32,863 nt of DNA from Octopus bimaculoides (taxonomy: Eukaryota), in NCBI RefSeq assembly GCF_001194135.2, contig NC_069004.1, positions 20,945,611-20,978,473 of the forward strand, read 5' to 3'. This document shows positions 567 through 21,220 of the stretch, piece by piece (the stretch's first letter is position 1; each line of letters begins with the position of its first letter). The notes under the pieces are model-generated. The model ran no database searches. It had not been told where the DNA came from and saw only the letters and a program-made list of their open reading frames with translations. The translations under genes were made by a program, and so were the position numbers.

Positions 567-569
<3 letters not shown>

Positions 570-574
570 TATGT

Positions 575-1000: not shown

Positions 1001-1053
1001 AAAAAAAAGATGTAAAAAAAAAGCTAGAGAAAACAAGAAAAAAAAACCCTTAC

Positions 1054-1172
1054 TCAGGATAGATTGCAACCACTTTTCTTTGATGTTTTGCTGGTTGAGT
1101 CAGATACAGGCTTCGAAGAAGAGTCATTGCCAGCTTCTACTTCTTCACATGAAGTTGGAGGTAACTTTTGAG
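1054..1172 (-). CDS. Rab5/17/22-group GTPase, last coding exon: (A)QKLPPTSCEEVEAGNDSSSKPVSDSTSKTSKKSGCNLS*
   Basis: Acceptor is ttttcctctttatcttctcag| with AG at 1173-1174. The phase-1 start (G+CT=Ala) matches the exon at 14675-14767. IAQKLP matches Rab5 IAKKLP and is followed by a hypervariable tail and terminal CNLS*. Confidence 0.88.
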
Positions 1173-1631
1173 CTGAGAAGATAAAGAGGAAAATGCATGC
1201 ATATATATGTGTGTGTATCAATGTGTGTGTATTGTACATATATGTACTTGAAAATCTTACAAAATTGAAACCGATTTACACAATAACTCTTAATCATGAA
1301 ATGAATTATGGCTAACAAAGGTAGCCATAATACACAGTGTGCATTATCCTATCTTACAATTTAGTATAAAGATGTTAAAATAAAAACATCATTACATAAA
1401 AATACAGATACCTTTCCTTTCGTTTCATAATCACTCTTCCTGACCATCAGCATAATCCTCACTTTCTTAAAATTCTAATTTAGAAGAATTTTATTGCATA
1501 TTCTATAAACCTTCATAAGAATTTAAACAGGATATACTGCAGTTTTATATATTCAGGAAATCTTAAAATAGTATCTATTCTATAGTTGTTGCCAAAGTTG
1601 ATGCATATTTGTGTGTGTGTGTGTATACATA

Positions 1632-1755
1632 GGTGCAGGCATAGCTGTGTGGTAAGAAGCTTGCTTCCCAACCACATGGTTCCGGGTTCAGTCCCACTGC
1701 ACGGCACCTTGAGCAAGTATCTTCTACTGTAGCCTCAGGTCAACCAAAGCCTTGT
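1632..1755 (+). mobile_element. tRNA-derived SINE head (3'-truncated)
   Basis: ggtgcaggcatagctgtgtggtaag (A-box-like) ... gggttcagtccc (B-box-like) ... caaccaaagccttgt. Same family as 24841-24986. Confidence 0.8.
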
Positions 1756-1899
1756 TGTACCGTTGAATTACAAATAATGCTCATCTATTATGTTCGGGTG
1801 ACCCTATAGGTTCCAATAGTACAACTGTATTCGTCTTTGCTTAGGAAAAATGAGAAATTTTAGAAATATTACTTTATTTGTGTGTAATATGTATGGTTA

Positions 1900-2035
1900 A
1901 AATTTCATCAACAGCAAAAATATATGAATTTTCATTGGGGTTATGGCCATTATGCATAGAATATAATTTCCAAATTTCATAAAGATCCCTTCAGTACTTT
2001 TGATGTAGTTTTGGATAAAAAACAAATGACTAATG
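1900..2035 (+). mobile_element. Possible non-autonomous Helitron-like (Lep1/DINE-type) fragment
   Basis: ccaaatttcataaagatcccttcagtacttttgatgtag followed by a microsatellite. The resemblance is from memory only. Confidence 0.25.
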
Positions 2036-2385
2036 TGTGTGTCTGTGTGCATGTGTATGTGTGTGTCTGTGTGCATGTGTATGTGTGTGTATATATGTAT
2101 AGATATCTGTACGCATGTATATATGTGTGTATATGTGTACATATTACATGTACATCTATATATATACATCTACACATATGTATACATATAGATTTATATC
2201 TATATATATATATATACATATACGTGTACATATACATCTATATGCATACATGTATACATATACATCTCTCTGTGTCTTTCTCTCTCTCTATATATATATA
2301 TATACATGTATATAGATACATTTGTGCAGATATATATATGCATGTATGTATGTATATATGTATGTATGCCTGTAGATATGTGTGA
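2030..2385. repeat. Compound (TA/TG/CA)n low-complexity tract
   Basis: Direct inspection. It generates the spurious YI/CV/HT-rich ORFs. Confidence 0.95.
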
Positions 2386-2614
2386 GTATAGTTTCACCAT
2401 AGTAGATTCAGTATGAAAATGAAACCATGAAAGTGAAAGTATCTGTCATTACAGTATCAAAATGTGATCGTTTCAGTTTTGATACTGAAATAGTGGAAAG
2501 GTTTCATTTTTAAAGAGAAAGTATTTGACATGAGTGTTTTTGTTTCACTTTTGATATGTAATAGTTAAATAGTGGAGGAGATATGATGTTGCTGTGGGCT
2601 CGAACTATGCAAGA

Positions 2615-2760
2615 AGTTAAACATTTTTTGACTAAAACACAATCGGGACCCTAAGTAAGAAATGTGTAAAATTTGAATGAAATTGGTTGTGTAGTTCTGG
2701 AGTTTTAGGGATTCACACAGACACACGCACACACACAGACATACATTCTCATTTATGTGT
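2615..2760 (+). mobile_element. Possible Helitron-like (Lep1-type) 3' fragment
   Basis: aaatttgaatgaaattggttgtgtagttctggagttttagggattcacacagacac...cattctcatttat has the layout of Lep1-like 3' ends. Not verifiable here. Confidence 0.3.
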
Positions 2761-2811
2761 AAATATATATATATACACACACACACACATATATATATAT
2801 ACATATATATA

Positions 2812-3283
2812 NNNNNNNNNNNNNNNNNNNNNNNNNNNNNNNNNNNNNNNNNNNNNNNNNNNNNNNNNNNNNNNNNNNNNNNNNNNNNNNNNNNNNNNNN
2901 NNNNNNNNNNNNNNNNNNNNNNNNNNNNNNNNNNNNNNNNNNNNNNNNNNNNNNNNNNNNNNNNNNNNNNNNNNNNNNNNNNNNNNNNNNNNNNNNNNNN
3001 NNNNNNNNNNNNNNNNNNNNNNNNNNNNNNNNNNNNNNNNNNNNNNNNNNNNNNNNNNNNNNNNNNNNNNNNNNNNNNNNNNNNNNNNNNNNNNNNNNNN
3101 NNNNNNNNNNNNNNNNNNNNNNNNNNNNNNNNNNNNNNNNNNNNNNNNNNNNNNNNNNNNNNNNNNNNNNNNNNNNNNNNNNNNNNNNNNNNNNNNNNNN
3201 NNNNNNNNNNNNNNNNNNNNNNNNNNNNNNNNNNNNNNNNNNNNNNNNNNNNNNNNNNNNNNNNNNNNNNNNNNNNNNNNNNN
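2812..3283. other. Assembly gap (N). Other gaps: 16061-16574, 19789-20187, 20715-21031, 24391-24771, 28185-29018
   Basis: N runs, mostly flanked by (TA)n or poly-T. Confidence 1.
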
Positions 3284-3600
3284 CCACTGAGGTGTGGGCT
3301 GGAGCATTGTCGTGATGAAAAAGGACTCCTCTGGTGAGCATTCCCGGTCTTTTTTCTTTGATTGCTTCTCGGAGGCGTTTCAGTAACTGAGAATAATACA
3401 GCCCTGTCATGGTGTGACCCTTTACAAGGTAATCGATCAGCAAGACAACTTGAGAATCCAAAAAAACTGACACCATGACCTTGCCAGCTGAAGGAATGAC
3501 CCTGGCCTTCTTTGGGGTAAGAGAAATTGTGTGCTTCCACTGCTTTGATTGTTCTTTGGTTTCAGGCTGGTAGTGATGAACCCAACTTTTGTCCATCTGA
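3284..3600 (-). mobile_element. Mariner (DD34D-type) transposase catalytic-core fragment
   Basis: MDKSWVHHYQPETKEQSKQW...SAGKVMVSVF...GVLFHHDNAPAHTS. Its 3' part runs into the gap and its 5' part is missing. Confidence 0.9.
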
Positions 3601-3655
3601 AGTGTTAAAGAGAAAATTTTTTTAAATGTTTCTGCAAGAATTCTTGGACAAACTA

Positions 3656-4907
3656 CAGAGGTTGGACAAAATAATGGAAACATCATACAATTTCAAACAA
3701 ATTTATTTTAATATGGGTTAGTACCACCTTTGGCAGTAATTGCAGCTTGAATTCTATGAGGTATGGACTTATACAAAATTTGAATTGTTTCCAAAGGAAT
3801 TTTTGTCCATTCTTCAGTTAAAACAGTCTCCAGTTCTTGTAGTAATGCTGGTGGAGGATATAAACTCCTTGTTTTTCTAAAATGCACCATGAATGTTCAA
3901 TAATATTGAGATCTGGGGACTGTGGTAGACAGAAAAGATGTTGAACTTCATTAGGATATTCCTTAGGCCATTCAGTAACAACTTTAGCTGTGTGAATTGG
4001 TGCATTATCATCCTGAAAGATTGCATTTCCCTCCGTTAACAGTTCCACAACCATAGGATGAATTTGATCAGATAAAATGCCTAAATAGTCTTGACTATTA
4101 ATTCTGCCACGAAGGGAAACCATTGGGACAGTGGATTTCCAATATATAGCCCACCAGATCATCATGGATCCTCCTCCATGTTTAACAGTTGGTTGAAGGT
4201 AGTCTGGGTCAAATGCTTCTTTTGGCTGTCTCCACATGTATACTCGGCCAGTGGTTGGAAATAACTCGTCTGAAAAAATAACATTCTTCTACTGCTCTAG
4301 GGACCAATTCTGTAGGTTTTTACCCCACTCTAAACACTTTGCAATGTTTGTTTTTGAAAGTAGTGGTTTTCTGATTGCAGCCCTCCCGTGAAATCTGGCT
4401 TTGTGCAGCCCCTGGTGAACAGTTTTTGTGGAAACTGGATTCTTGAGGTGGTCATTAAGTTCTACAGTAATTTTGGGAGCTGTAATTTTGTAATCTTTTC
4501 TAACAATTCGTGTAAGAGTCCGAGGGTCTCTATCTGAAAGTTTTGGTTTTCTTCCGGAGTTTTGTATCAACAGGGAGGTTTTTCTCTCTTTCTCAAAGGT
4601 TGTCATTACTTTCAAGACAGTACTTCTTGATACACCAAACATTTTGGCTGTTTTCGTTAGGCTAGCACATGCCATACAAGCACCAACAATTTGACCTCTT
4701 TGAAAGTCCAATAGATCTATCATTTTAATGAATTTTAATTACCTTTTTCTGATATGTGAAAAGAAACAGCAATTTTAGCAAAACATACTAAGCAACCCTA
4801 ATAATAAATGAAAAAACAAAAATAAACAAGCTTTTGATGGTTTTATAGATATTTCAAAATTATGATGCTATGATGCTCGGTGTTTCCATTATTTTGTCCA
4901 ACCCCTG
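3656..4907 (-). mobile_element. Complete Tc1-like DNA transposon with DD36E triad (Incomer/IC-like); transposase pseudogene 3708-4723
   Basis: 27-bp TIRs CAG(A/G)GGTTGGACAAAATAATGGAAACA at 3656-3682 and 4881-4907 with 1 mismatch. TA TSD at 3654-55 and 4908-09. It has an HTH N-terminus, FSDE (Asp at 4268-4270) and QDDN-x-IIE with 36 residues between D and E. One TAG, a short in-frame deletion and one frameshift are visible. Confidence 0.95.
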
Positions 4908-5304
4908 TAGGTCTATGCACAAAGAGTGTAGCGTGTTTTGAATTAGATGATAACATTACACCTGTGTTCAAGCCTAATAGGAAAGTGCCTTTTGTGGCAA
5001 TAAAGCAAGTGGACGATGAGTTGGACATATTGCAAAAAAAAATGGAATCATTGAAAAAGTGGATCACATGAAATATGCAGCTCTGGCTATATGTATAAAA
5101 AAGAAAAATAACAAAATTAGGTTGTGTGCCAATTTTTTGACCAGTTTAAATGACTGTTTAAAAATGAACCATTATCCACTACCAATCCCAGAAGATATTT
5201 TTACAAAACTAAATGGAGAAAGATATTTTCAAAACTCGATCTGTCTGATGCATATCTACAAATCAAAGTAGATAAAAGATGCTCAAAGCTGTTAACGGTG
5301 AACA

Positions 5305-8300
5305 TGAACATGTTGGATGGCAATCTGGTATCTTCACTGGTGTACACGGGGGCTACGGTATTGGCTCCCGAAACGAAGAGGGAACTAGGCAACTGGAGTT
5401 CTGTGATACATGTAACCTTTTTAATCTGCAACACTAACTTCAGGAAGCCAGACAACTACCTGATAACCAATCAATCAGGTGACTCTACTAGCCAAATTGA
5501 TTTCATTCTCACCAGACAGTGGGACGCAGGGTTATTCTTAAATACAAAGACCCTCCCAGATGAAGAATGTACTTCCCAGCATAGACTAATCGTTAGTGAC
5601 TTTAGACTTGAGGCCAGAAGGATGCCAAGAAGCAGACCAATCCAGAAAAAAAAAATGGATTTGGAAGCTTAAGAACCCTTCACAGAGATTTAGGGACATA
5701 CTCATCAAGAAATTTGATGAGAGGGAGGAGATGAGGAGCTACAGAACTTGGACATAGAAGGTAGCTGGAAATTCCTATGGGACAGCTTACTGAATGCCAC
5801 AGACCAAGTCTGCGGATGCTGCAAAGTCCCTTCCAGACCAAGAGTAATGTGGTGGTGGAACAATATGGTAGACAAAGCCATTAGAGCAAAGAAACAGGCT
5901 GCAAAGCCTGGAAGAGTCGGGGTAGCGGGGAACTGTACCAGATAGCCAGAAGGGAGGCTGGACAACAGGTATACATAGCCAAGGGAGAAGCAGAAAAGAA
6001 GACGTTTTCCAATGTCCAGCAACATGAAGGCCAAAGAACTGAAGTATTTTGGATTGTAAGACAGTGTGTGAGACAAAACTGTGATGTTACAGGAGCAAAA
6101 TGTGTCCGCATGGATGATGATGCACTTGCTTTTAATGATTCGGAAAAGAAAGAGGCTTGGAGAAGCCATTATGAAAGACTGCTAAATGTGGAGAATGAAT
6201 GGAAGGAGGAGAGCCTGCCAAATGTTGACCCAGTAGAGGGACCAGCTATCCGAATAGATAAAGCAATTAAGGGTATGAAGCCAAGAAAAGCCCCTGGCCC
6301 ATCTGGAATCACTGCTGAGATGCTTAAAACATCTAGTGGTGTGGGCTACGGCCTAGTCACCTGCATTGTAAACCAGGGAGTTCATGACGGAGTCATACCC
6401 AATGACTGGCATAGCGCACCATAGTCAACTGCTACAAGGGTAAAGGTGATAGACATAACTACAGATGTATCAAACTGCTGGATCAGGTGATGAAGAACAC
6501 GGAGAATGTCATAGCCCAACTAATTAGGGAGAGAGTCTGCATAGATGCGATGCAGTTCAGTTTTGTACCAGGTAGAAGCACCACTAATGCTATATTCCTG
6601 ATGTGGAAACTGCAGGAGAAATACTTATCCAAAGATAAATCCCTATACTTGGCTTTTGTGGACTTGGTGAAAACCTTTGACAGGGTCCCCCAATCCCTTA
6701 TCTGGTGGGCGATGCAGAAGCTGGGTATTGACGAATGATTCATAAGGGCTGTACAGGCTCTATACAGAGATGCTGTTAGAAAGGTTAGGGTTGGCAATGA
6801 GTATAGTGAAGAATTCTGAGTAAAAGTAGGGGTCCACCAAGGATCAGCCCACAGCCCCTTCTTATTTATTATAGTCCTCCAGGTAATAACAAAGGAATTC
6901 AAGACAGGTTGTCCCTGGGAGCTCCTCTATGCAGAATCACTACCAGAACTAGAGAAGAAATTCCAAGTGTGGAAGCAAGGTTTTGAGTTGAAGGTCCTTA
7001 AAATCAATGTCGCAAAGACCAAAGTCCTAGTAAGTAGGAAGGCAAACAAATCACACACCCCTTCAGGTAGATGGCCCTGCTCGAACTGTAGAAAAGTTGT
7101 AGGTAGAAACTCCATAAGATGTACCCAGTGTAAGCTATGGACGCATAAGAGATGCAGCAACATCAAAGGAAGATTAACTGGGAAGATAGCTTTCGTCTGC
7201 AGCAGATGCACAGGGTCAATAAACACCACAGATACTCAGAAAACAGATTCCATCACATACCAAGGGGAGAAACTAGAAGTAGTTGATAGTCTCCACTACC
7301 TAGGGGACCAAGTCAGTAGTGGGGATGGATGCTCAGAGAGCGTTACCACTAGAATAAGTGTTGCCTGGGCAAAGTTCAGACTGCTTCTACTCATACTGGT
7401 GACAAAGGGTCTCTAGCTCAGAGTGAAAGGTAGATTGTATGATGCATGTGTACAAACTGCCATGCTTCATAGCAGTGAAACATGAGCTGTGACTGCTGAT
7501 GACATGTGTAGGCTCAAAAAAATGAAGCTAGCATGATCCACTGGATGTGCAATGTCAGTGTGCACAGACGACAGAGTATAAGTGTCCTGAGAGAAATGTT
7601 GGACATAAGAAGCATCAGATGTGGTGTGCAAGAGAGATGTTTGCATTGGTATGGTCATTTACTACAGGTGGATGAGGTGAGCTGTGTGAAGAAGTGCCAC
7701 TCCCAAACAGTGGAAGGAATCTGGGGTAGAAGGAGACCCAGGAAGACATGGGATGAAGTGATGAAGCATGACCATTGAATGTTGGGCCTCAAAGAGGAAA
7801 TGATGAAAGACTGAGACCTCTGGAGATATGCTGTGACTGAGAAGACCCAGCAAATAAAGTGAGATCACAGCTATAATCTACACCAGTGTACTCTTAGAGT
7901 GTAGGCCAACATGCCATGTTTGAGGAGACCTATTGAGTCAAGTACATTGGCATCAAAATAAAATCAAATCACAATCAAATGGAAATTGTAGTTCTGGTCC
8001 CCGTGCTGGTGGCATGTAAAAAGCACCATCCAAACATGGTCAATGCCAGACCCCTTGCTCCGACTGGCTTCTGTGCTGGTGGCACGTAAAAAGCACCATC
8101 CGAATGTGGCTGATGCCAACACTGCCTTGACTGGCTCCCGTGCCAGTGGCACGTAAAAGCACCATTCAAACGTGGTCGATGCCAGCCCCCTCTGACCCCT
8201 GTGCCAGTGGCATGTAAAAGCACCATCCAAACATGGTCGATGCCAGCCCTCTCTGGCTCCCATGCCAGTGGTACGTAAAAAGTACTATCTGATCGTTGTT

Positions 8301-8510
8301 GATGCCAGCCCCCTCTGGCCCCTGTGCCAGTGGCACGTAAAAAGTACCCATTACACTCTCGGAGTGGTTGGCGTTAGGAAGGGCATTCAGCTGTAGAAAC
8401 ATTGCCAGATCAGACTGGTGCCTAGTGCAGCCTCCTGACTTTCCAAACCCCAGTCGAACCGTCCAACCCATGCCAGCATGGAAAACGGACGCTAAACGAT
8501 GATGACGACG
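5305..8510 (+). mobile_element. RTE-clade LINE, 5'-truncated in the endonuclease, inactive; RT with internal PHD-type finger, 3' UTR tandem array and (GAT/GAC)n tail
   Basis: EN motifs (HVG...GVHGGYG...RNEEG; QIDFIL; SQHRL) and RT motifs (KAPGPSG, QFSFVPGRSTT, AFVDLVKTFDRVP, HQGS, ELLYA, YLG) are present. The tail is ...gctaaacgatgatgacgacg. Removing it restores the Gypsy frame TVN-THS. Confidence 0.95.
8003..8350 (+). repeat. Six about 61-70-bp tandem units in the RTE 3' UTR
   Basis: Unit starts are at about 8003, 8073, 8140, 8201, 8262 and 8324, each reading RTGCYRGTGGYAYGTAAAA(A)GYAC. Confidence 0.92.
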
Positions 8511-10417
8511 ACACACAGTGATCTATACAAATACAACAGACCACCTTTTGGACTGAAAGTAACACCCACAATATTCCAACAGATGATGGATGCGATGTTG
8601 GCAGACTGTCAAGTTGCTATTCCTTACATTGATGATGTGTTAATCAAAAGCAAATTGTAGAATGAGCATATCAAACATGTGAAGTGCATCTTTAAAAGAA
8701 TTAAGGATCATGATTTCATACTTAGTGAAGAAAAATGTGAACTTTTTTTGCCTAAAATCAAATAGCTAAGTCAAATCATAGATATGAATGGAAGACGTCC
8801 TGACTTGTCAAGGGCAGACACAATCAAGAATATGCCTCCTCCAATAAATATACTGACATTACAAGCTTTCCTTGGCCAAGTAAATTACTATCAACAGTAC
8901 ATTTCTAATTTACAATAATTGAGAGCACCATTAAATGGTTTACTAAAACAAGGAGTAAAATGGAATTGGTCAGTAAACTGCCAAAACACATTTGAAAACA
9001 AAGAAAATACTAATTTCTGACTTATCACAAATGCATTTCGATCCGAGAATGGACATTGTTGTAGCAACTGATGCTTCGAAGTATGGAATAGGAGCAGTCT
9101 TGCTACACAAGTATAAAGATTGAAATATGAAGCCAAATGTTCATACTTCGTGTTCGCTGATAGCAGCATAAAAGAAAGTATAGTAAAAAAGGAAGCTCTA
9201 TCAATTATTTTTGCGGTAAAAAATTTCACAAAATTCTACATGGTATAAGTTTTTTGTTATGAACAGTCCATTGGCCAGTACTATCAATTTTTGGATCAAA
9301 GAAAGGATTGCCTACCCATACAGGAAACCAACTACAATGCTGGCATACAATATTGCTGAACTACAATTTTAAGATGCAGTATATTCTATTGAAGAAAATT
9401 GGTCATGCAGACTGCTTACCAAGGCTAATTCCCAAGAGCATGGAACCGCTATAAGAGACCATGATAGTGTCATTGCAGTCAGAAAATGAAGTAAGAATTA
9501 TTGTGTATAATATAATCCAGAAACTGCCAGTGACAGCGCAAGATATAAAAATGAAATCTGCAAAGAAATTTACTTTACAAGAATGAAAGAAACATTGAAA
9601 AATAAGCATAATAAAAAATACAAATTCAAATAATTTCTCACTATGCGACAATGTCCTAAGCACAGAGAGTAATAGTACCAAGTTCCTACTCAAGTTCTTT
9701 GCTTGATATGGTGTTCCAGGCATGTTAGCTTCAGATAATGGAACACAATTCACAGGATATGAATTAAGAAATTTCTGCAAAATACATGCCATAAAGATCA
9801 AATGGGCAGGTATTAAGATTTGTCAACACATTCGAAAGAGCTCTAAGAAAAGCTAGGAACCAGCTAGATAATGACAAGGCACTAACGAAACTTTTGAAAG
9901 TATATAGAATAACGCCAAATCCGAATACTAATTCAGGAAAGTTACCAGCAGAGTGAATGTTTGTGCGTAAAATAAAATCGATCTTCGATAAATTATTGCC
10001 AGGAAAAAATACATATAAATGAAAGACAAAAAATACATTTGACGGAAATACAAGAAATATTACAAAATATTTCGAAGTAGTAGATTTAAAAATTACAAAA
10101 CTGGTAAAGAAGGTTGGGAGGATGTCTGTGTAATCAAAAGATTAGATAACATGATGTATTTAATTACAGAACAACATTTGGAACATAAGAGACACATTAA
10201 CCAGTTAAAGACGAAACATACAGAAGAATGGAGGGTAATAGCAATGGAAGTCTTCTATAATATGTTTGAAGTGCCAGCACCGAGAGAGATTGAACCCCAT
10301 AGGACTAGCTTCAGAAAATGAAAACAAACTGAATATCTGGTAATACCTAAACGAAAAAGATATCAGATTTAAAAAAAAAACAAAAAAACGAGTGCTTAGT
10401 ACAATGAAAAGAAAAAG

Positions 10418-10668
10418 TGCTGTGTGCAATGAACAATATTACGTTAAAAGATACAACAGCTTAGAAAAAAAATAGGATGAGAGTTATGACGCCCACTTGT
10501 GAGTGGTAGACTGGTCTGGGTAAAGTATAAATAGTAACAATCCAAGTGAGTTCAAAGGTTCAGAGTTCAGAGTCGAGTGAAGTTCATGTTAGTTCACAGT
10601 GAAGTCGTTGGTTAGTTCACAAGGAATATTGATTGCTGGTTTGTAAAGAGATTTGTTAGTTCATTACA
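10418..10668 (+). repeat. Putative Gypsy 3' LTR
   Basis: A purine tract gaaaagaaaaag (10406-10417) follows the end of pol. The segment starts TG, contains TATAAATA at about 10526 and ends ...ATTACA. No 5' LTR is available for confirmation. Confidence 0.4.
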
Positions 10669-10669
10669 T

Positions 10670-10725
10670 TCTTTTATTCTCTTACTGGCTTTAGCTGAAG
10701 GTTGGGGCCATGCTGGAGCACCACC
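10670..10725 (-). mobile_element. SINE 3'-tail fragment
   Basis: The reverse complement reads aaaggtggtgctccagcatggcccc...gtaagagaataaaaga, the same tail type as 968-1001. Confidence 0.5.
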
Positions 10726-10764
10726 TTTCAGTGTTTGGGTCTCCTTTCTATACTAGTTTCAATG

Positions 10765-10930
10765 AAGAAGCAAGCTGGACAGAGTTTTTCTTTGTGCCTC
10801 CTACTGCGATGTAGGTTCATCTGGGATTTCAAATACAAATTTGTCCAGATACTTATTGAAGTTCTTCACATTTACACCTCACAAATCTCTGAGGTTGTTT
10901 GGCAGGATAATAAACAGTTCTGATCCCCTA
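10765..10930 (-). mobile_element. CR1/L2-group (Daphne/Crack-like) LINE ORF2 C-terminal fragment
   Basis: The minus frame reads RGSELFIILPNNLRDL*GVNVKNFNKYLDKFVFEIPDEPT, resembling the GPxLFNxLP...FKxxLDKFL..IPDEP terminus. Confidence 0.5.
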
Positions 10931-10934
10931 GATG

Positions 10935-11344
10935 GGCAACCTTGTATCTCCTCTACAGCAGCACTACTGTTTCTGTCTACATTCTCGATCACTTTCTCTA
11001 ACCGGGTAACCATATACCTCCTCTACAGCAAGACACTTGTTTCTGTCTCTCTGTCACACTCTAATCTTTCATCATCTGGTACAAGATCACCTCCTCCAAT
11101 GCTCCTTGGTGACCCTGCCAGTGCTGGTGCCATATAAAAAGCAGCCAGTCCACACTGTAAAGTAGTTGGTATTTGGAAATGCATCCAGCTGTAAAACCCA
11201 TACCAAAACTGACCTCACTTTGCATCCAGCCATAAAAACCTTGCCAAAACAGACACAGAAGTCTGGTGCAGTCTTCAGCCTAGCCAGCTCTTGTCAAAGC
11301 ATCTAACCCATGCCAGCATGGAAAGCAGACTTTAACTGATGATG
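10935..11344 (+). mobile_element. Non-autonomous element or divergent LINE 3' UTR sharing the RTE 3' tail
   Basis: The 3' about 220 bp align with the RTE tail (gtgctggtgccatataaaaagca...aacccatgccagcatggaaagcagac...gatgatg). The upstream part is unrelated. Internal duplications occur at 10948/11018 and 11180/11221. Confidence 0.6.
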
Positions 11345-11349
11345 TATTT

Positions 11350-13933
11350 CAGGTATGGTTGTTCGTCGGAACGACAAGGACCATCTGATCATCCTAGAGG
11401 GGGGTGGGGAGGTCAACATTGGTGAGTGCGGAGATGGTTGATAAGCCCAATCCGCGCTTGGAAAGGTCTGCTGCAGTAGGGACAGGGAATGGTAGCAGGT
11501 GCCGGGAGCTTCAAAGCATTGTTCTTTCTGTTCTGCCTGCACTTCTCTGCAGCAGCTTTCCTGTCACTTTCATATTGGCGGGGCACCGTTGTGAACAGCA
11601 GCCCGCCACTTGGTCCTATCTAAAGCAGTCTGCTCCCATGATGACGGGTCAATGTTGAAGGCCTTCAGTGATACCTTTAGGCTGTCTTTAAACCGTTTCC
11701 TCTGGCCACCATGGGAGCGCTTGCCGTGCTGAAGCTCACCAAGCAGAAGCTTCTTGGGTATTCTGTAGTCTGGCATGTGGGCTACATGACCAGCCCAGTG
11801 AAGCTGAGTTCTCATCAGGATGGAAGGGATGCTTGGGAGCCCGGCACGAATGAGGACTTCTGTGTCTGGTATCCTTTCCTGCCAGCTTATGCCAAGTAGA
11901 TTCCTCAGCCTGGTGGTGTGGAAGTGATTTAGATTTTTGGCGTGGCGTTGGTAGACAGTCCACGACTCACATCCATACAGTAGGGTAGTGAGTACGACAG
12001 CTTTGTAGACCTTGATCTTTATCATGGAGGTGATGCCTCTTCTGTCCCATACATTCTTGTGGAGTCTGCCGAAGACAGCACTTGCTTTGGCGAGTCTGGT
12101 GTTGATCTCATCGTCAATGACTACATTGCGGGAAAGCGTACTGCCAAAGTAGGTGAATTTGTCAACCGCATTGAGTCTTTGCTCGTTGATGGAAATGTTG
12201 GGTTCTACATATGATTTTCCCGAAGCAGGTTGGTGCATCACCTCGGTCTTCTTGGTACTGATTGTGAGACCAAAGTTGTCACAGGCTTCCGAGAATATGT
12301 CTGCACTGTGTTGCATGTCCGCCTCAGAGGTAGCATTTAGGGCACAGTCATCAGCAAACAGAAAGTCATTGATAGTGTCTGTTGTAACTTCGGATTTTGC
12401 TCGTAGCCTCCTGACATTGAAAACTGATCCATCAAATCTGTACCTAATTCCAATGCCCACATCAGCGTCTCCAAAGGCGTCCGTCAGCCTTGCAGAGAAC
12501 ATGAGGCTGAACAGGGTAGGATCTAAAACACACCCCTGTTTCACTCCATTTGTGACTTCAAAAGGGTCAGAGGTCTCTCCCACTATCTCATACTCTGGCC
12601 AGCATTCCATCATGAAATTGGCGTGTGATGGTGATGAATTTTATAGGACACCCATACTTTGCCATGATTCTCCAGAGGCCTTCTCTGCTTACAGTGTCAA
12701 AGGCTTTGGTCAGATCAACATAAGTGGAGTATAGATCCACGTTTTGTTCTTGGCACTTTTCTTGGAGCTGCCTGGCAGCAAACACCATATCAATAGTACC
12801 GCGATCCTTGCGGAATCCACATTGGCTCTCTGGTAAGAGGTCTTTTTCCAGATGAACTATGAGCCTGTTCAGCAGTACTCTGGCCAGTACCTTGCCTGCA
12901 ATGGATAACAAGGATATCCCACGATAGTTATTACAGGCCTGGCGGTTTCCTTTGTGCTTGTAAAGATGTATGATGGAGGTATCTTTGAAGTTTTGGGGGA
13001 GTACCTCCTCCTGCCAGATGAGGTGGAGAAGCTGATGGAGTTTCTCAGTCAAGGTCCTGCTGCCCTCTTTATAGATCTCAGCTGGGATAGAGTCTGAGCC
13101 AGGCGCTTTCCCAGTGGACAACAGGCAGATTGCTTTCTCAATCTCTTCAAGGGTTGGAAGTTCATCCATTTCCTCATTTACAGTAATTTGGGGGAGGCGG
13201 TCAATGGCCCCATCATTGATGGTAGAGGGGCGGTTTAGTACACTTTTAAAATGCTCTGCCCACCTTCCCAGGACCATGTCTTTGTTGGTGATGAAAGTGG
13301 ATCCGTCCGCACCGAGGAAAGGTGATGATCCAGATGAGGTTGGACCATAAATTTCCTTAAGACCATCATGAAAGTTCTTCATGTCATTCCCATCTGCATA
13401 TCCTTGAATCTCTTCTGCTTTCTTGCTTAGCCAGGAATCATGCATCTGTCTGAGCTTCATCTGAATGTTGCTACACAAACTTTTCCATGTGTCCTTCTTT
13501 GGTTTGGAGGATGGATCTTCAATATGGGCTTTGTATTCAGAATGCTTTTCTTCTAGCAACTGAGTAATCTCAGTGCAGTTTTCATCAAACCAGTCTTTGT
13601 GTTTCCTGGAGATTGGTCCAAGGCACTCCAAAGCTGTGTTGTACACGATCTCACGGATTGCTTCCCATGCTGCTTCCACGTCTTGACTGCCTATCGCAAT
13701 AGGTTCAAGGTGTTCTGCCAGAGTTTCAGAGAGAGATTTCTGGACAGTTTCTGTTTTCAGCTTGTTGACATTCAGTCGTTTTGGTGCTTTCTTTCCTTGG
13801 GGTCTTCTCTTTGGTTGGATATGCAGATTGAGCTTAGCAACTATGAGGCGGTGGTGTGTCCAGCACTCAGCTCCACAGATGGCCCTAGTGATACGTATGT
13901 CCCGCCTGTCCCTCTTCCTGATGATGACATAGT
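11350..13933 (-). mobile_element. BovB/RTE-1-like LINE, 5'-truncated at the end of the endonuclease, near-intact RT
   Basis: It contains (D)YVIIRKRDRRDIRITRAICGAECWTHHRL, KAPGSDSIP, NYRGISLL, QCGFRKDRGT, VDLTKAFDTV, GVKQGCVL, FLFADD, FTYFGS and a terminal CPYC..ARIGLINHLRTH. There is a stop plus frameshift near 12590 and a frameshift near 11580. Confidence 0.95.
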
Positions 13934-13939
13934 AAATTA

Positions 13940-14290
13940 GATACCAGTGTTTTGAGCGAGGATTTCAGATAAAAAGATGTGGAACTGTACTACAACTGTC
14001 TTGTTTCTGATTGGAGTTCAAGAATTCTCTTGTTTTATAGATTAGTATCAGTTATGGACACATTTTGATTGGCTGAGGATGATCACATGATTAGGTTTAG
14101 AAATTTTTGTAAGTTTTGTCACCATGTCACCTTTGGTCTGGCAGATGCTTTGCTTCAACCACAGATTTGGTTATCACCCTCAGCAGATTGTCCTGTAAGA
14201 ACCTCCAGTTGTTCTCTATGTTGTATATCTCCATCTCTTTCTCCTTCTCATTAAAGGCTTCATTAGGGTCATCTCTAAATCTCTGCCCAT
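13940..14290 (-). mobile_element. Possible old LINE fragment (EN-RT linker)
   Basis: ORF 14127..14357 contains IENNWRFLQDNLLRVITKSV, weakly like LINE linker regions. Confidence 0.3.
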
Positions 14291-14315
14291 ATGATATGGG
14301 CAGAGATTTAGAGAT
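14271..14315. repeat. Perfect 45-bp palindrome (22-bp arms, 1-nt spacer)
   Basis: ATCTCTAAATCTCTGCCCATAT-G-ATATGGGCAGAGATTTAGAGAT. Confidence 0.97.
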
Positions 14316-14674
14316 CCTTATGCATGTATGTATGTAATAAGGAGTTGGTAACAACAAAAGTAAAATCTGAGATCTTAAATTATTGTTATTCTAAGTTTAA
14401 CATTGTTATCATGACAGAGTTCTGTCAAAAAGTCAGAGGAGAAAAGCAGTAGCTGAAACCTTTTGCAGAGCCTGTCAGACCTGTGGGAGGAAGACCCTAA
14501 GACTAGACACTTGGTCTGAATGTAGGTAACAGAGTGACACATAAGGGTCAAATAATGGTTTTAAACTGAGGTGCCATTAAGTTGGATCCAACTCAGAAAC
14601 TTGTCTATTAGTTGGTAACTAAATGTAAAGCTCTGAATTCCATAAACTGAAAGGAAACAACAAATAAATCTCAC

Positions 14675-14767: not shown

Positions 14768-15236
14768 CTAAAGAAAAAAAAGAAAGAAAGAAGAAACAGA
14801 TATAGTTAGATAAAAAAATTAATTAATGATTTCTTATTTATCTTTCCAATCATTAACCTGAAAATTACAATTAGCTCTCACTGTTGAAGACTGGGTCTTT
14901 CAATTCAGTTATGTCATACAATAGATGGATAAATCATATACTAGTCACAAGCATACAGATACATTAATTTAGAGCTTATCCTAATCTCAGGATTTTCTGA
15001 AATGGTGAGTACAAGCTTTGCTCCTGGGTGGGACACTGGCCCACTGTAAGCACCAACCCCTAGCTGGAGATAACTGGATGTGGTTATTTTGACACTGATG
15101 ATTTGGTACAGGTGACTGGATGTTTAGGCTGCTTTGGCAATTGTGTTTTGGCACTGGAGGTAAATGCATGTCTATACAGAAATATGTGCACATAGACAGA
15201 GTGAGAGAGAGACATTATGCATACAAATACAAACAG

Positions 15237-15266
15237 GAGAGAGAGAGCGAGAGAGAGAGAGGGAGG

Positions 15267-15297
<31 letters not shown>
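15237..15297. repeat. (GA)n microsatellite
   Basis: Direct inspection. Confidence 0.95.
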
Positions 15298-15846
15298 GGG
15301 GAAAGAATAAGAGATACATAAAATGTCTGATGTCACATAAGTCAGCACCAAAATGTCTTATACTTTACTGTTGGTGCTCATTGTCAGTTGCATGGAATAG
15401 AATAAAATGACATAAAACATTTCTTGGGTATAGTGTACCTTGAGTAGCACCACTCACTGTGTCCTTCTATACTAACACAGTAAGGTGTAAACTGAGAAAA
15501 ATATAGCTATTATTTCTATTATGTTGATCAGCTCTGTGGCGATTTCCTCATTGGCTCCAGTGAAGTGGAGAGTAAGACAAAGCAAACCAATCAGAGTCAT
15601 GTTTCTAGCTTAGTAGCACAACACAATGGCCTAAGTTGTAAGGTTATTACCAACACAGCTGTCAGAAAAAAGCTACCAAACTGGGAATGATACCTGAGAT
15701 AAAGTTGTGCACTCTATGCAGGTAGATTTACTTTCCTTACCCCTCTTGGTTGAGGATATATCTATATTCTATTTTGTCATTCTTTTAATGTAACCTTGCT
15801 GAACACTACCTTCAAGGAGTTTTAGTTCATTATAGCAACCCTAGTA

Positions 15847-16847
15847 ATCATCATCATCATCATCATCATCGTTTAACGTCCGCTTTCCATGCTAGCATGG
15901 GTTGGACGATTTGACTGAGGACTGGTGAAACCGAATGGCAACACCAGGCTCCAGTCTAATTTGGCAGAGTTTCTACAGCTGGATGCCTTTCCTAACGCCA
16001 ACCACTCAGAGAGTGTAGTGGGTGCTTTTACGTGTCACCCGCACGAAAACGGCCACGCTCNNNNNNNNNNNNNNNNNNNNNNNNNNNNNNNNNNNNNNNN
16101 NNNNNNNNNNNNNNNNNNNNNNNNNNNNNNNNNNNNNNNNNNNNNNNNNNNNNNNNNNNNNNNNNNNNNNNNNNNNNNNNNNNNNNNNNNNNNNNNNNNN
16201 NNNNNNNNNNNNNNNNNNNNNNNNNNNNNNNNNNNNNNNNNNNNNNNNNNNNNNNNNNNNNNNNNNNNNNNNNNNNNNNNNNNNNNNNNNNNNNNNNNNN
16301 NNNNNNNNNNNNNNNNNNNNNNNNNNNNNNNNNNNNNNNNNNNNNNNNNNNNNNNNNNNNNNNNNNNNNNNNNNNNNNNNNNNNNNNNNNNNNNNNNNNN
16401 NNNNNNNNNNNNNNNNNNNNNNNNNNNNNNNNNNNNNNNNNNNNNNNNNNNNNNNNNNNNNNNNNNNNNNNNNNNNNNNNNNNNNNNNNNNNNNNNNNNN
16501 NNNNNNNNNNNNNNNNNNNNNNNNNNNNNNNNNNNNNNNNNNNNNNNNNNNNNNNNNNNNNNNNNNNNNNNNNNGGAGCATACTGGCTTCATTCCTTGCG
16601 AGCTTACGTATGTCCTCAGCAGTTACTGCCCATGTTTCACTGCCATGTAGCATGGCTGTTCGTACGCATGCGTCATACAGTCTGCCTTTTACTCTGAGTG
16701 AGAGTCCCTTTGTCGCCAGCAGGGGTAAGAGCTCTCTAAACTTTGCCCAGGCTGTTCTTATTCTAGCAGCTACACTTTCAGCGCACCCACCCCCACTACT
16801 AACTTGGTCGCCCAGATAGCGGAAGCTATCGACTACCTCTAGTTTTT
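15847..16847 (-). mobile_element. 5'-truncated RTE LINE spanning a gap
   Basis: The tail appears as (ATC)n at 15847-15870, followed by the conserved RTE 3' end. After the gap it reads EKLEVVDSFRYLGDQV...LHGSETW. It retains many CpGs. A possible degenerate TSD is aaccctagta (15837-46) / aaccctggaa (16848-57). Confidence 0.92.
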
Positions 16848-17074
16848 AACCCTGGAATGAGATAGAAGTTGTTTCCTGTTTGTTTACAGTCTTTATTGCA
16901 CCTGAACATCTGCCACAAACAAAAATCTGGTACTTATTTCATTATTTCATCTGGTACTTATTTTATTACACTCAAAAGACTTTTAAAACAATGTAGACAT
17001 TGACTTAAGGACAGGTAACTCAGTCAGACATAAATAGCACAAGATACTCAACTCCTTCTCCAACACTTTGTTAT

Positions 17075-17113
<39 letters not shown>

Positions 17114-17728
17114 TACACGCACTCACACTAGCAGACCCAGTCTGAACCCTATTGACTTTTCAGTAAGCCTGTTTATAAATATTGAAAGTAGTAGTCAGCA
17201 TAGTACCATGAGTTTTGGATTCTTCTTCCGGTTCTTCCACTAGTCTCAAAGATCCTGCAAAATCTATGCTACTGCCCTTCTTTCATTGACTAAACAATAA
17301 GCAATTATAGAGAAATACAAGTATATCAAATACTATACAATATAAAAGTTCTTGATTTATCTTTTGAAGATAGGTCATAATTACCAAATGGAAGTTAAGA
17401 TTAGCTCCATTATGAAGAAGTGAGATAATCTCAAGAATGACATTAAGGAACCGGACAGTTATTGACATATGTTTCTGCCTCAATTCTTCAACTTTATATC
17501 CAGTAGCCAAGAGACTTAGTCTTTTACAAAAAGAGTAGAACATAGTTATGGCCCAGGTAATTTGCATAATTTAAACAAGAACGAGAACAAATACAGGTAT
17601 ATCAAATACCATACAACATAAGTTATTATAGATTTATTAAAACTTGTCAGCTTTGGAGTTTTTGATTCTTGAGATTATCTCCTCTCTCATATGAATCCGA
17701 TCATAATTGCCATTTGTTAATTGTAATA

Positions 17729-19540
17729 TCAGGTCATTAAGAATGAAATGTTCAATTTTCTTACACACAAAGTTTGACAGTTGTTAACTCTAATGTTTTA
17801 TCTTGACAATTCTTTGTTTTACAACATTGAAGAGTTACATAATCACTTTTCGAAATGTAATTCATGGTGTCTGATTATATTGTGAGTTTTCTCTTGTAAA
17901 TCAATTTTTGTGAACCCATGGATAGATAAAAAGTTTGTGTTGTTTATGAATATGAGTTCCGCAAGTTCCAGTCGGGTGACTTTACTCTTGAAAATCAGCC
18001 CCGTGGTAGTCCTGAGACCTGAGACCAAGGTGGATAATGATAAGCTGGAAACTGTAGTGGAAGTGGGTACTTCTCAAACTTCACCAAAAAAAGCTAATGA
18101 TGTTTGTTTGGTGGTCCAGCACTGGTGTCATCTATTACAGCTTCATGAGACCTGGTAAGTCAATTACAGTGGATGTATACATCAACCAATTGGATGAAAT
18201 GATGAGTGAGCTTGCAATTAAACAACTGAGATTGGTCAACAGAAACAAGCCAATTCTCTTGCAAGACAATGCTTGACCACATGTTGTACAAAGAATGCTA
18301 CTCAAGTCACAGGAACTGAACTTGGAAGTACTCTGTCATTTACCATATTCACCAGACCTTGCACCAACAGACTATCACGTTTTCCAGGCATTCGACAACT
18401 TTTTGCAAGGAAAAAACTTCAAATCTGAAGAAGATGCAAAAACAGTCTTTTGTGATTTCATCACCTCTTGCTCTCCAGAATTCTTAGCTGCCAGCATAAA
18501 TAAGCTACCGATAAAATGGCGAAATTGTGTTGATAATTTGGATGCATACTTTGATTAACTGCATTACTTTTGTTGAGATAAAGTATGCTCCGCTGGATGT
18601 GTAATGTCAGTGTGCATACTCGACAGAGTGTAAGTACTTTGAGAGAAAAGTTGGACCTAAGAAGCATCAGATGTGGTATGCAAGAGAGACAACTGCGCTG
18701 GTATGGTCATGTGGTAAGAATGGATGGGGATAGCTGTGTGAAAAAGTGCTACACCCTAGCAGTTGAGGGAACATCTGGAAGAGGTAGACCCAGGAAGACC
18801 TGGGATGATGTGGTGAAGCACAACCTTCGAACATTAGGCCTCACCGAGGCAATGACTAGTGACCAAGATCTTTGGAAATATGCTGTGCGTGAGAAGACCC
18901 GGCAAGCTAAGTGAGACCATAACCAGTGGCCTATGCCAGGGGTGTAACCAGCCCACTTATGCATACCTTTCCTTCACTGGACACTAAACTCTGCTTGCAA
19001 AGACCTATTGAGGCAAGTGAAATTGAAATCAAATTTGATGACTGGCATCCATGCTGGCGGAGCGCTAAGAGCACCATCCGAGCATGATTGTTGCCAGAGC
19101 AGGTGACTAGCTTTCATGCCGGTGGCACATAAATAGTACCATTCAAGCGTGATCATTACCAGCGTCACCTTACTGGCACTTATGCCAGTGGCATGTGAAA
19201 AAACATTCGAGCGAGGTCGTTGCCAGTGCCGCTGGACTGGCTCCTGTGCATGAGGCACATAAAAAACACCATTTGAGCGTGGCCATTGCCAGTACTGCCT
19301 GACTGGCACTCATGCCGGTGGCACGTAAAAGCACCCAGTACACTCTCGGAGTGGTTGGCATTAGGAAGGGCATCCAGCTGTAGAATCTCTGCCAGATCAG
19401 ATTGGAGCCTGGTGCAGCCATCTGGTTTCACCAGTCCTCAGTCAAATTGTCCAACCCATGCCAGCATGGAAGGCGGATGTTAAACGATGATGATGATGAT
19501 GATGAGTTCAAAATCAGACATTTCTTTTTTAATGACCTGA
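17729..19540 (+). mobile_element. Internally deleted mariner (DD34D) split by an RTE insertion
   Basis: TIRs TCAGGTCATTAA-x4-GAAATGT at 17729-17751 and 19518-19540 (21/23), TA flanks. Transposase pieces are MDR..YEYEF|RKFQSGDF...DNDKL, LHQKKLM..WW, QDNA-x-YSPDLAPTD (34 spacing) and AYFD* at 18558. Confidence 0.88.
18585..19504 (+). mobile_element. 5'-truncated RTE LINE inserted in the mariner 3' UTR
   Basis: ORF 18585..18914 reads MLRWMCNVSV...RWYGHV...GRPRKTW. The 3' UTR has five about 65-bp units (19049-19335) and a (GAT)n tail. agt occurs at both junctions. Confidence 0.93.
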
Positions 19541-19680
19541 TATATCTTGGAGATAATTTCAAGAAATTTATGTTGTGTAATATTTTATATACCTGTATTT
19601 GTTTATGTTGTTCAAATACATGCAACTGACTATTTTGCATTATTTCTCAAAGTTCATTTTTTAATACTATTTATACATAT

Positions 19681-19728
<48 letters not shown>

Positions 19729-21093
19729 ATGCATTAGGTAGTTAGAGTAAACCCCAGCTGTTTCCTCTTGAAAAATATCTGCTTATTCNNNNNNNNNNNN
19801 NNNNNNNNNNNNNNNNNNNNNNNNNNNNNNNNNNNNNNNNNNNNNNNNNNNNNNNNNNNNNNNNNNNNNNNNNNNNNNNNNNNNNNNNNNNNNNNNNNNN
19901 NNNNNNNNNNNNNNNNNNNNNNNNNNNNNNNNNNNNNNNNNNNNNNNNNNNNNNNNNNNNNNNNNNNNNNNNNNNNNNNNNNNNNNNNNNNNNNNNNNNN
20001 NNNNNNNNNNNNNNNNNNNNNNNNNNNNNNNNNNNNNNNNNNNNNNNNNNNNNNNNNNNNNNNNNNNNNNNNNNNNNNNNNNNNNNNNNNNNNNNNNNNN
20101 NNNNNNNNNNNNNNNNNNNNNNNNNNNNNNNNNNNNNNNNNNNNNNNNNNNNNNNNNNNNNNNNNNNNNNNNNNNNNNNNNNNNNNNACCCCACATTAGT
20201 TCTGCAGGAATATAAATAAAACATAAAAAACAGACAGTGTTGGAACTCTTTTAAGCAAAATAATATATTCCTCTATACACAATCATACAAAAAAATCCAC
20301 CTTTTTTTGTATTTATTTTTACTCGCATATATATATATATATATATATATACATCTTAATGATACTAAAACCCTAGAGATGTTTGTGTGTACCTGAAATA
20401 TCACAGAAATAGTATAGTTTATCTTAATTTATTTTGCATATTATTCTCATACTTACCTTCGGCAGTGCAGTACAAATTTTTGTGATATTTGGACCTCTAT
20501 TTATTAACATAAACAATTAAACAGAATTTTTGTTTGTTTATTTCTTGATGAAAAAAAAACATGGGTTTCTATGACATCAAAACACATACACACATACAGA
20601 ATACACACACATATATTTTTAAGTGAATGTGATTTCAAAAATGTAAGTTTTTAGTACAGCAAGTATTCATACTTTAGATTTCTTTAAACAGACAATATTT
20701 TTTTTTTTTTTTTTNNNNNNNNNNNNNNNNNNNNNNNNNNNNNNNNNNNNNNNNNNNNNNNNNNNNNNNNNNNNNNNNNNNNNNNNNNNNNNNNNNNNNN
20801 NNNNNNNNNNNNNNNNNNNNNNNNNNNNNNNNNNNNNNNNNNNNNNNNNNNNNNNNNNNNNNNNNNNNNNNNNNNNNNNNNNNNNNNNNNNNNNNNNNNN
20901 NNNNNNNNNNNNNNNNNNNNNNNNNNNNNNNNNNNNNNNNNNNNNNNNNNNNNNNNNNNNNNNNNNNNNNNNNNNNNNNNNNNNNNNNNNNNNNNNNNNN
21001 NNNNNNNNNNNNNNNNNNNNNNNNNNNNNNNATATATATGTATGTATGTATGTATATGTGTGTGTGTGTGTGCGTGTATAGAAAACTTCATAC

Positions 21094-21220
21094 CTGTTGT
21101 TTTGACCTTTCTACTAGCTTCTAGATCACATTTGTTGCCAACCAATGCCACTACTAAATTGGCACTGCCATGTTTCTGGACCTTCTTCCACCAGCTGGTT
21201 GTAGCATTTGCAAAAGAATT
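21094..21220 (-). CDS. Rab GTPase exon with G4 motif: NSFANATTSWWKKVQKHGSANLVVALVGNKCDLEASRKVKTT
   Basis: 127 nt. Acceptor is tttccctcttttttacacag| (AG at 21221-22) and donor CAG|GTATGA (GT at 21092-93). It contains NKCD (NKxD). Phase 0 in, phase 1 out. Confidence 0.93.

Follow-up and report, generated by a model that had tools for sequence, protein, structure and literature searches.

A divergent Rab-fold GTPase gene of Octopus bimaculoides keeps the seven-exon structure of Rab22 and is probably the former parental locus of an intronless Rab22A

To what kind of gene do three short Rab-like exons, set far apart between large introns in an octopus genome, belong, and where did that gene come from? 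The question is raised by a stretch of 32,863 nucleotides (nt) of Octopus bimaculoides (NCBI RefSeq assembly GCF_001194135.2, contig NC_069004.1, positions 20,945,611 to 20,978,473 of the forward strand), here called the window, which has a G+C content of 38% and contains six assembly gaps. A preliminary description, made from the letters alone, had proposed a hidden, divergent Rab GTPase gene with transposon-filled introns. The window holds exons 5–7 of a cephalopod GTPase gene. We consider it likely that this gene derives from Rab22 and is the intron-bearing parent locus, which diverged after a retrocopy had taken over and has been under purifying selection since.

The minus strand does contain all three exons of that description, with the lengths (127, 93 and 119 nt), phases (0/1/1) and intervening introns (6,326 and 13,502 bp) that it gave:

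21220-21094, minus strand: coding exon 5 of seven, 127 nt, starting in phase 0 and ending in phase 1; acceptor ...ttttacacag/AAT, donor CAG/gtatga; product NSFANATTSWWKKVQKHGSANLVVALVGNKCDLEASRKVKTT(D), which carries the G4 motif NKCD, a one-residue insertion and WW
14767-14675, minus strand: coding exon 6 of seven, 93 nt, phase 1 at both ends; acceptor ...ttctttag/ATGG, donor TTG/gtgaga; product (D)GKSFADSNGAVFVETSALTSTNLVFLLQEI(A), which carries the G5 motif ETSAL
1172-1054, minus strand: exon 7, coding part only, 119 nt up to and including TGA (1056-1054); acceptor ...tcttctcag/CTC; product (A)QKLPPTSCEEVEAGNDSSSKPVSDSTSKTSKKSGCNLS and stop, the hypervariable tail and CaaX box

With GT-AG introns, exons 5–7 splice to the C-terminal half of a Rab, a peptide of 112 residues (NSFANATTSWWKKVQKHGSANLVVALVGNKCDLEASRKVKTTDGKSFADSNGAVFVETSALTSTNLVFLLQEIAQKLPPTSCEEVEAGNDSSSKPVSDSTSKTSKKSGCNLS, then stop) that starts with NSFANATTSWWKK and ends in KKSGCNLS. 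It matches the Pfam Ras profile PF00071 with E=1.2e-17 and 64.5 bits (cut-off 21.6) over profile positions 85-160 of 162, and its nearest solved structures are Rab31, Rab5A, plant RABF2b and Rab22A (E ~1e-15). Residues 91-202 of the RefSeq protein XP_052832223.1 (202 amino acids; P0158 below) match it with 100% identity, and exon 5 supplies residues 91-133. The record is named 'ras-related protein Rab-5A-like isoform X1 [Octopus bimaculoides]'.

The N-terminal half lies elsewhere. The preliminary description had found no exon for G1–G3 in the rest of the window, and our searches agree with it: residues 1-90 of P0158 share no 8-mer with the six-frame translation of the whole window, and tblastn with Rab5A, Rab22A, Rab31, Rab21 or the N-terminal 90 residues of P0158 found no such exon in 21221-32863. 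The four Rab queries were human sequences, and that for Rab5A agrees with Protein Data Bank (PDB) alignments. Exons 1–4 must therefore be sought upstream, beyond the edge of the window, and 21221-32863 belongs to intron 4:

21221-32863, minus strand: 3' part of intron 4, with gaps at 24391-24771 and 28185-29018
14768-21093, minus strand: intron 5, assembled length 6,326 bp, with three gaps totalling 1,230 N
1173-14674, minus strand: intron 6, assembled length 13,502 bp, with 472 N

In assembly GCA_001194135.2 the gene spans 128,946 bp, so that the earlier figure of more than 20 kb grows to about 129 kb. The four gaps between exons 5 and 7 (2812-3283, 16061-16574, 19789-20187 and 20715-21031) are all intronic, the one nearest to coding sequence beginning 62 nt past the exon 5 donor. 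The reading frames are therefore independent of gap continuity, and the intron lengths alone are estimates. The orthologous introns of Argonauta measure 1,029 bp (intron 5) and 4,672 bp (intron 6). An open reading frame (ORF) that runs through the gap adjoining exon 5 ('MALVGNKCDL...XXXX') was rejected as an artefact of translation across N.

The gene turned out not to be hidden. It has been modelled by NCBI since the first O. bimaculoides annotation of 2015 (XP_014784904.1), which falls into one cluster at 90% identity with XP_052832223.1, XP_052832224.1 and models from O. vulgaris ('Rab-22A isoform X1') and O. sinensis ('Rab-5A'). The Argonauta hians orthologue (P0159) is modelled as well. 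RefSeq thus already knows the gene under three contradictory names: Rab-5A-like, Rab-5A and Rab-22A isoform X1. Exon 7 of the preliminary description is also exon 7 of the current RefSeq model, whereas the superseded XP_014784904.1 ended in another, cryptic exon:

3562-3597, minus strand: cryptic terminal exon of XP_014784904.1, ending ...DGQKLGSSLPA and stop, within a mariner-like fragment of intron 6

This looks like a false terminal exon derived from a transposon. A word-indexed protein search with the 112-residue peptide had returned partial matches at 34–60% identity and missed the identical RefSeq protein, so its negatives cannot be read as 'unannotated'. Taken alone it had made an unannotated gene a candidate, which was ruled out when that protein was retrieved through a relative at 70% identity. 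Full-text literature searches found nothing on this gene. While the gene itself is no discovery, its nature appears to be undescribed.

When 1.84 billion cluster representatives were searched exhaustively with HMMER, that relative, P0009 (198 amino acids), was the one close match over the full query; the remaining single-domain matches reach at most 53% identity. Used as a query in turn, P0009 returned two named proteins, P0158 and P0159. It is encoded by an uninterrupted 597-nt ORF on contigs of 2.2–2.7 kb from 19 sequencing runs, which are most simply transcripts. They align exactly over the exon 5/6 junction, and over the exon 6/7 junction at the protein level. Contigs of a relative thus cross both junctions; no transcript of O. 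bimaculoides itself was seen. In addition, the Argonauta locus, which has no gaps, shows the same order as the window, the alignable parts being the three exons and copies of short interspersed nuclear elements (SINEs) only. The identity to P0158, the P0009 contigs and the Argonauta colinearity together support the exon order, orientation and junctions.

Where the gene came from is told by its introns. Exact exon chains were mapped on genomic loci, with the following coding exon lengths:

Argonauta, divergent gene: 36/80/82/75/127/93/119 nt
Lottia, Rab22: 36/80/82/72/124/93/116 nt
Mercenaria, Rab22: 36/80/82/72/124/93/128 nt
Branchiostoma, Rab22: 36/80/82/72/217/119 nt

All six coding introns of the divergent gene stand at Rab22 positions and in Rab22 phases in Lottia and Mercenaria, five of them also in Branchiostoma. 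Two 3-nt differences in length correspond to an extra residue in switch II of Argonauta and to the helix-3 insertion. At 127, 93 and 119 nt, the exons in the window correspond to Rab22 exons 5–7 of 124, 93 and 116–128 nt. Exon 5 is homologous to exon 5 of Argonauta (127 nt) and to that of Rab22 in Lottia and Mercenaria (124 nt), exon 6 equals exon 6 of Lottia, Mercenaria and Argonauta in length and phase, and exon 7 of Argonauta likewise measures 119 nt, ending ...KKSGCHLS and stop. The preliminary description had called the sequence a mosaic with resemblances to Rab5, Rab22/31 and Rab17. As an explanation of where the gene came from, this finds no support: the exon–intron architecture is Rab22 throughout, and by the exon maps both intron positions in the window are Rab22 positions.

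Besides this gene, the same genomes have a canonical Rab22A of their own. Searching with a bivalve Rab22A-like protein retrieved it on another O. bimaculoides scaffold (P0347, XP_014778318.1) and in Argonauta (Rab-22A-like, P0357), together with the cephalopod transcripts P0345 and P0348. P0347 and P0357 are 63–68% identical to other mollusc Rab22 proteins. Their whole G domain and CC motif lie in one exon, of 609 nt in O. bimaculoides (L013:3001-3609) and 597 nt in Argonauta (L012:3001-3597). The NCBI models of canonical Rab22A add a 39-nt 3' exon (KSTIEAILKDVY) 11–22 kb downstream. P0397, a protein from Logan (a public sequencing-run assembly), has the read-through end of the single exon (...AKNVGTNQ and stop), bar one extra Asn. 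The octopod canonical Rab22A looks like a retrogene. Because the seven-exon map of the divergent gene matches Rab22 and the canonical G domain sits in one exon, it is the divergent gene that kept the ancestral Rab22 introns, and the conserved-looking Rab22A that is the intronless copy.

The most economical reading of this arrangement is, we infer, a history of retroposition. An intronless Rab22 retrocopy would have arisen and taken on the work of the ancestral gene. The parental locus with its introns, whose last exons lie in the window, would then have been freed from that role and evolved fast into something new, and the remodelled parent would finally have been held by purifying selection.

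The single-exon gene shows some features of its own. Between Octopus and Argonauta its synonymous divergence (dS) is 0.53, as compared with saturation in the seven-exon gene of the same species pair, and about 350 nt upstream and 240 nt downstream align at about 80%. The single-exon Rab22A therefore seems to be constrained at silent and flanking sites, a constraint that might be linked to cephalopod RNA editing, though this is no more than a guess. In another cephalopod, the genomic ORF P0401 and the Logan protein P0400, which share a 90% cluster, run unbroken from RSAKEW to the tail across ancestral intron positions 5 and 6, and carry unrelated residues (MFLSYC and ...SSFYC) immediately ahead of RSAKEW. 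The unrelated residues suggest that this canonical Rab22 gene, in which introns 5 and 6 are absent, has an intron three codons past the place of ancestral intron 4, and the unbroken run hints that the intronless Rab22 copy is older than the octopod–decapod split.

The divergent proteins themselves are confined to cephalopods: Octopus species, Argonauta, and one species known from RNA contigs (P0009). P0158, P0159, P0393 and P0009 form a clade of their own with 100% bootstrap support on a long branch, in trees built by neighbour-joining with 300 bootstraps on G-domain columns with and without the switch regions. The earlier proposal of a lineage-specific, fast-evolving paralogue in the Rab5/Rab22 group is borne out by this clade, its branch length and the separate canonical Rab22A. 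Over the full length, identity to any Rab22, Rab5 or Rab1 is 40–46%. Within the G domain it is 44–46% to mollusc Rab22, 43% to human Rab5A and 42–45% to Rab1. Full-length PDB sequence searches rank Rab31 (4e-40) before Rab5A (8e-39), Rab22A (1.5e-38) and Rab1A (9e-37), and the best non-cephalopod HMMER matches are bivalve Rab22A-like proteins (E=3e-43 to 1.5e-41).

Between Octopus and Argonauta, 12% of the G domain differs in the divergent protein and 4% in canonical Rab22A. As synonymous sites were saturated in every pair compared, identities by codon position were used instead of dN/dS (nonsynonymous over synonymous divergence). For exons 5–7 they amount to 84, 90 and 42% at positions 1, 2 and 3, with dN at 0.16 and dS saturated. 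The introns of the two genera are not alignable, and saturation of dS is therefore the expected neutral state. O. bimaculoides, Argonauta, the P0009 species and O. vulgaris/sinensis all have an unbroken ORF and canonical splice sites. The codon-position pattern, the intact ORFs in at least four species and the conserved insertion and CaaX box together argue for a gene under purifying selection and not a pseudogene.

What has been kept and what has changed in the protein can be read from the alignment of the clade. G1 (GDRGVGKS), G4 (NKCD, within GNKCD), G5 (ETSAL) and the catalytic Gln are retained; G4 and G5 are encoded by window exons 5 and 6, and the altered switch residues outside the window. 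The Thr column of switch I is Asn in all members (STIG has become TNLG in octopods, and P0009 has ANFG), and G3 reads DTPGQ in octopods and DTARQ in P0009. The clade thus departs from the canonical G2 threonine and DxxGQ switch motifs. Switch II has EGLLTNYSSQMHGA in place of the Rab22 EKYRALAPMYYRGA, with RabF3 and RabF4 gone and, in octopods, the triad tyrosine as well. Judged on an alignment of Rab22 sequences and two outgroups, the near-invariant positions T37, A62, Y67, L70, P72, Y74 and R76 and the terminal CC have changed. The one-residue insertion and the WW remarked on in the preliminary description are real: helix 3 starts with one extra residue (SFANATTSWW against SF-xxKxWV), and both features are kept in three cephalopod sequences.

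How far the Rab family motifs are kept can be put in numbers. We counted RabF1–F5 (IGVDF, KLQIW, RFRSIT, YYRGA and LVYDIT) by hand on the alignment, scoring as in PMC3504004. P0158 (LGSSF/KFQIW/GLLTNY/QMHGA/IVYDVT) scores 12 of 27 (44%), with RabF2 and RabF5 kept and RabF3 and RabF4 lost; the same count gives 15 of 27 for canonical Rab22A of octopus and 17 of 27 for human Rab5A, and the lowest score of an accepted C. elegans Rab is 48% (PMC3504004). The fold is another matter. In an AlphaFold2 model with a mean predicted local distance difference test (pLDDT) of 80.8, low confidence is confined to the switch regions and the tail. Foldseek finds Rab5, Rab2 and Rab22 structures as top matches, with target-normalised template modelling (TM) scores of about 0.92 and Rab5A/B/C ranked first. 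The predicted structure is a normal Rab fold.

The C-terminus has also been rebuilt. In place of the double cysteine of the CC type, which is absent, the clade has a single-Cys CaaX box (CNLS, CHLS or CHIS, in the context GCNLS, GCHLS or NCHIS) with lysines upstream. The CaaX box of H-Ras is CVLS. Because a conserved single-Cys CaaX ending in Ser adjoins a lysine-rich patch, the CaaX rule (PMC3504004) suggests membrane attachment by Ras-style farnesylation together with the lysine patch, which would probably replace double geranylgeranylation dependent on the Rab escort protein (REP). With G1, G4 and G5 intact, guanine-nucleotide binding is probably retained. The motifs further suggest that the canonical GTP-dependent switch is altered or lost, and that the same holds for the surfaces recognised by the Vps9-type guanine-nucleotide exchange factors (GEFs) of Rab5 and Rab22, by Rab5/22 effectors, and by REP and the GDP-dissociation inhibitor (GDI).

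How well, then, does this reading stand against others? That the gene is an ordinary one-to-one orthologue of Rab5 or Rab22 on a normal branch, odd only because its C-terminal half was read, is extremely unlikely. The automatic names Rab-5A-like, Rab-5A and Rab-22A isoform X1 and the best-matching structures (Rab31, Rab5A, Rab22A) would fit it, but both Octopus and Argonauta have a separate canonical Rab22A, the branch is long, identity is 40–46% where octopus canonical Rab22A reaches 63–68% to mollusc Rab22, and near-invariant positions and the terminal CC have changed. Descent from Rab5 or a different Rab5-supergroup member, with intron positions that would be ancient and group-wide, is likewise very improbable. 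It could draw on Foldseek, which puts Rab5A/B/C first, on a Rab5A identity (43%) close to that of Rab22 (44–46%), and on the suggestion in the preliminary description that two of the intron positions are also Rab5 positions. Yet the first coding exon measures exactly 36 nt, as in every Rab22 examined, and the N-terminus MLVRNVKLVFLGD parallels the Rab22 MAVREVKLCLLGD, while that of Rab5 is some 20 residues longer; the top non-cephalopod HMMER matches are Rab22A-like, and GNKCDLE, ETSALT and IAxKLP are common to mollusc Rab22. We also think it improbable that the parental copy is decaying, as a still transcribed pseudogene-to-be with no protein function. Radical changes at the catalytically important G2 Thr, G3 Ala/Gly and switch II would be expected of such a copy, as would a huge, transposon-swamped gene for which an exact full-length O. 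bimaculoides transcript is not on record. This is at odds with ORFs and canonical splice sites that are intact across the four lineages named above, with the codon-position pattern, low dN and saturated dS, with G1, G4, G5, insertion and CaaX box conserved throughout the clade, and with ORF-bearing contigs from 19 sequencing runs.

There is more to be said for a duplication at the DNA level, in which the divergent gene would be a Rab22 duplicate and canonical Rab22A, sitting at the ancestral locus, would have lost its coding introns through recombination with cDNA. A seven-exon structure shows copying with introns and not genomic location, and P0401 and P0400 suggest an intron in the canonical gene of another cephalopod. 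The site of that intron, however, matches none of the ancestral Rab22 introns, of which numbers 5 and 6 are absent there too; the loss of all six coding introns at once is most simply explained by retroposition, and one gene is on a scaffold of 36 Mb and the other on one of 200 Mb. We regard this alternative as unlikely. Several points nevertheless limit the retroposition history or what we have made of it. Neither a poly-A remnant nor target-site duplications were found at the single-exon Rab22A locus, so that a route by intron loss is possible, as the duplication alternative would have it. No tblastx match was found between the 10-kb flanks of Lottia Rab22 and either the Argonauta flanks or the window; Argonauta has no annotated neighbours within 10 kb. 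The exon maps set beside the divergent gene are those of Rab22 genes. In the trees, the clade groups with Rab22 in 12% of bootstraps with all G-domain columns and in 27% with the switch regions removed, and one tree attaches it to Rab1/Rab11 or to a Rab6-like sequence; this unstable attachment is probably long-branch behaviour. No transcript of O. bimaculoides stands behind P0158, the exact protein being recorded on an NCBI genome contig only. Finally, the statements on nucleotide binding, farnesylation and lost contacts to REP, GDI and GEFs are motif-based inferences, and some Rabs that end in CXXX are still geranylgeranylated via REP (PMC3504004).

Set beside Rab22 (Rab22A/Rab31), the divergent gene shares the seven-exon coding architecture with its phases, the length and pattern of the N-terminus, the motifs GNKCDLE, ETSALT and IAxKLP of mollusc Rab22, and the fold (target-normalised TM-score of about 0.93 to the Rab22 structure 1yvd), and Rab31 is its best PDB sequence match. 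It differs in a protein that is only 44–46% identical, with Asn in switch I, DTPGQ or DTARQ as G3, switch II, RabF3/F4 and triad tyrosine replaced, an extra helix-3 residue, WW for WV and a single-Cys CaaX for CC, and it coexists with canonical Rab22A in the same genomes and hence is not a one-to-one orthologue. With Rab5 (Rab5A/B/C) it has in common the fold, the IAxKLP segment after helix 5 and the name given by the NCBI pipeline; unlike Rab5 it lacks the long N-terminus and the Rab5 switch II (ERYHSLAPMYYRGA), ends in CaaX rather than CCSN, and is 40–43% identical.

The new C-terminus brings the divergent protein close to CaaX Ras proteins and to those Rabs that end in CXXX (Rab8, Rab13, Rab18, Rab23 and Rab28), a minority among accepted Rabs (PMC3504004). 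It has a single Cys four residues from the end, an aliphatic a2, Ser as X, and lysines upstream, as they do. In those Rabs, however, the switch and RabF motifs are canonical and processing still goes through REP, and in contrast to Ras the interswitch and the context of G4 and G5 are Rab-like. As to its history, the closest parallel is the retrogene replacement or 'orphaned retrogene' of amphioxus SYCP1 (PMC5803294). There too a copy with a single coding exon keeps the conserved sequence and outgroups are multi-exon, but the multi-exon parent was lost, whereas here the parent-type gene survives, diverged and apparently under purifying selection.

A bolder version of the retroposition history is possible, and we advance it tentatively. 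A Rab22 retrocopy made on the coleoid stem may have taken the endosomal role, and the original locus may have become a new class of Rab-fold protein, with altered switches, lost REP, GDI and Vps9 surfaces and an anchor of farnesylated CaaX box and lysines, that purifying selection kept through the octopod radiation and in a cephalopod lineage outside Octopus and Argonauta. Such a protein could act as a cephalopod-specific membrane switch or as a constitutively bound 'pseudo-switch'. If our main reading is right, the pair would show cleanly how a parent gene can gain a new function, rather than be lost, after replacement by its retrogene, and it would be a lineage-specific addition to the membrane-trafficking or signalling machinery of cephalopods. 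The case is also a practical warning: names based on similarity and distance trees fail for this gene, and intron positions resolve its ancestry. A core endosomal Rab gene has kept its ancient exon structure and lost the hallmarks of a Rab: switch II, RabF3/F4 and the CC end.

Two smaller points concern the ends of these genes. Past the stop codon of the divergent gene, the last 1,053 nt (window 1-1053, minus strand) have no AATAAA or ATTAAA, so that the window does not fix where the transcript ends; the 3' untranslated region may be spliced or extend past it. The sequence GTAAGG directly follows the stop codon. Many mollusc Rab22 models (P0160, P0290, P0347 and others) run 4–25 residues past the CC (...GCCGGGGKRNSDIIY; ...SCCFSSS...KDVY), which is unusual for a Rab prenylation site. 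These extensions may be alternative last exons or model errors.

The introns, finally, are filled with mobile elements, as had been proposed, and are those of a real spliced gene. Long interspersed nuclear elements (LINEs), Tc1/mariner and SINE-like elements were found:

18295-18558, plus strand: mariner-like fragment, intron 5
18585-18914, plus strand: LINE C-terminal ORF, intron 5
15847-16018 and 19114-19505: SINE-like arrays, intron 5
11570-13679, minus strand: LINE reverse-transcriptase ORFs, intron 6, two overlapping ORFs of 347 and 363 amino acids
about 5298-7778, plus strand: second LINE-like element, intron 6
3818-4723, minus strand: Tc1/mariner transposase, intron 6
about 3290-3686, minus strand: mariner fragment, intron 6
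8000-8516: SINE-like array, intron 6

The two ORFs at 11570-13679 have the same orientation as the gene and each match a different half of the RVT_1 profile; they are a single LINE whose ORF is split by a frameshift. A LINE C-terminal peptide (RLRWYGHV.RMD.DSCVKKC….GRGRPRKTWDEVVKHNL) has copies at 140-613 (minus), 7533-7778 (plus), 16575-16653 (minus) and 18585-18914 (plus). The copy at 140-613 falls downstream of the stop codon, and the two copies scanned against Pfam (140-613 and 18585-18914) gave no match. The SINE-like element has internal tandem units of 61–66 nt (GTGGCACGTAAAA...) and occurs at 8000-8516, 11222-11344, 15847-16018 and 19114-19505. The Argonauta locus (L011) holds dozens of copies at 70–90% identity, and the family is therefore common to octopods.

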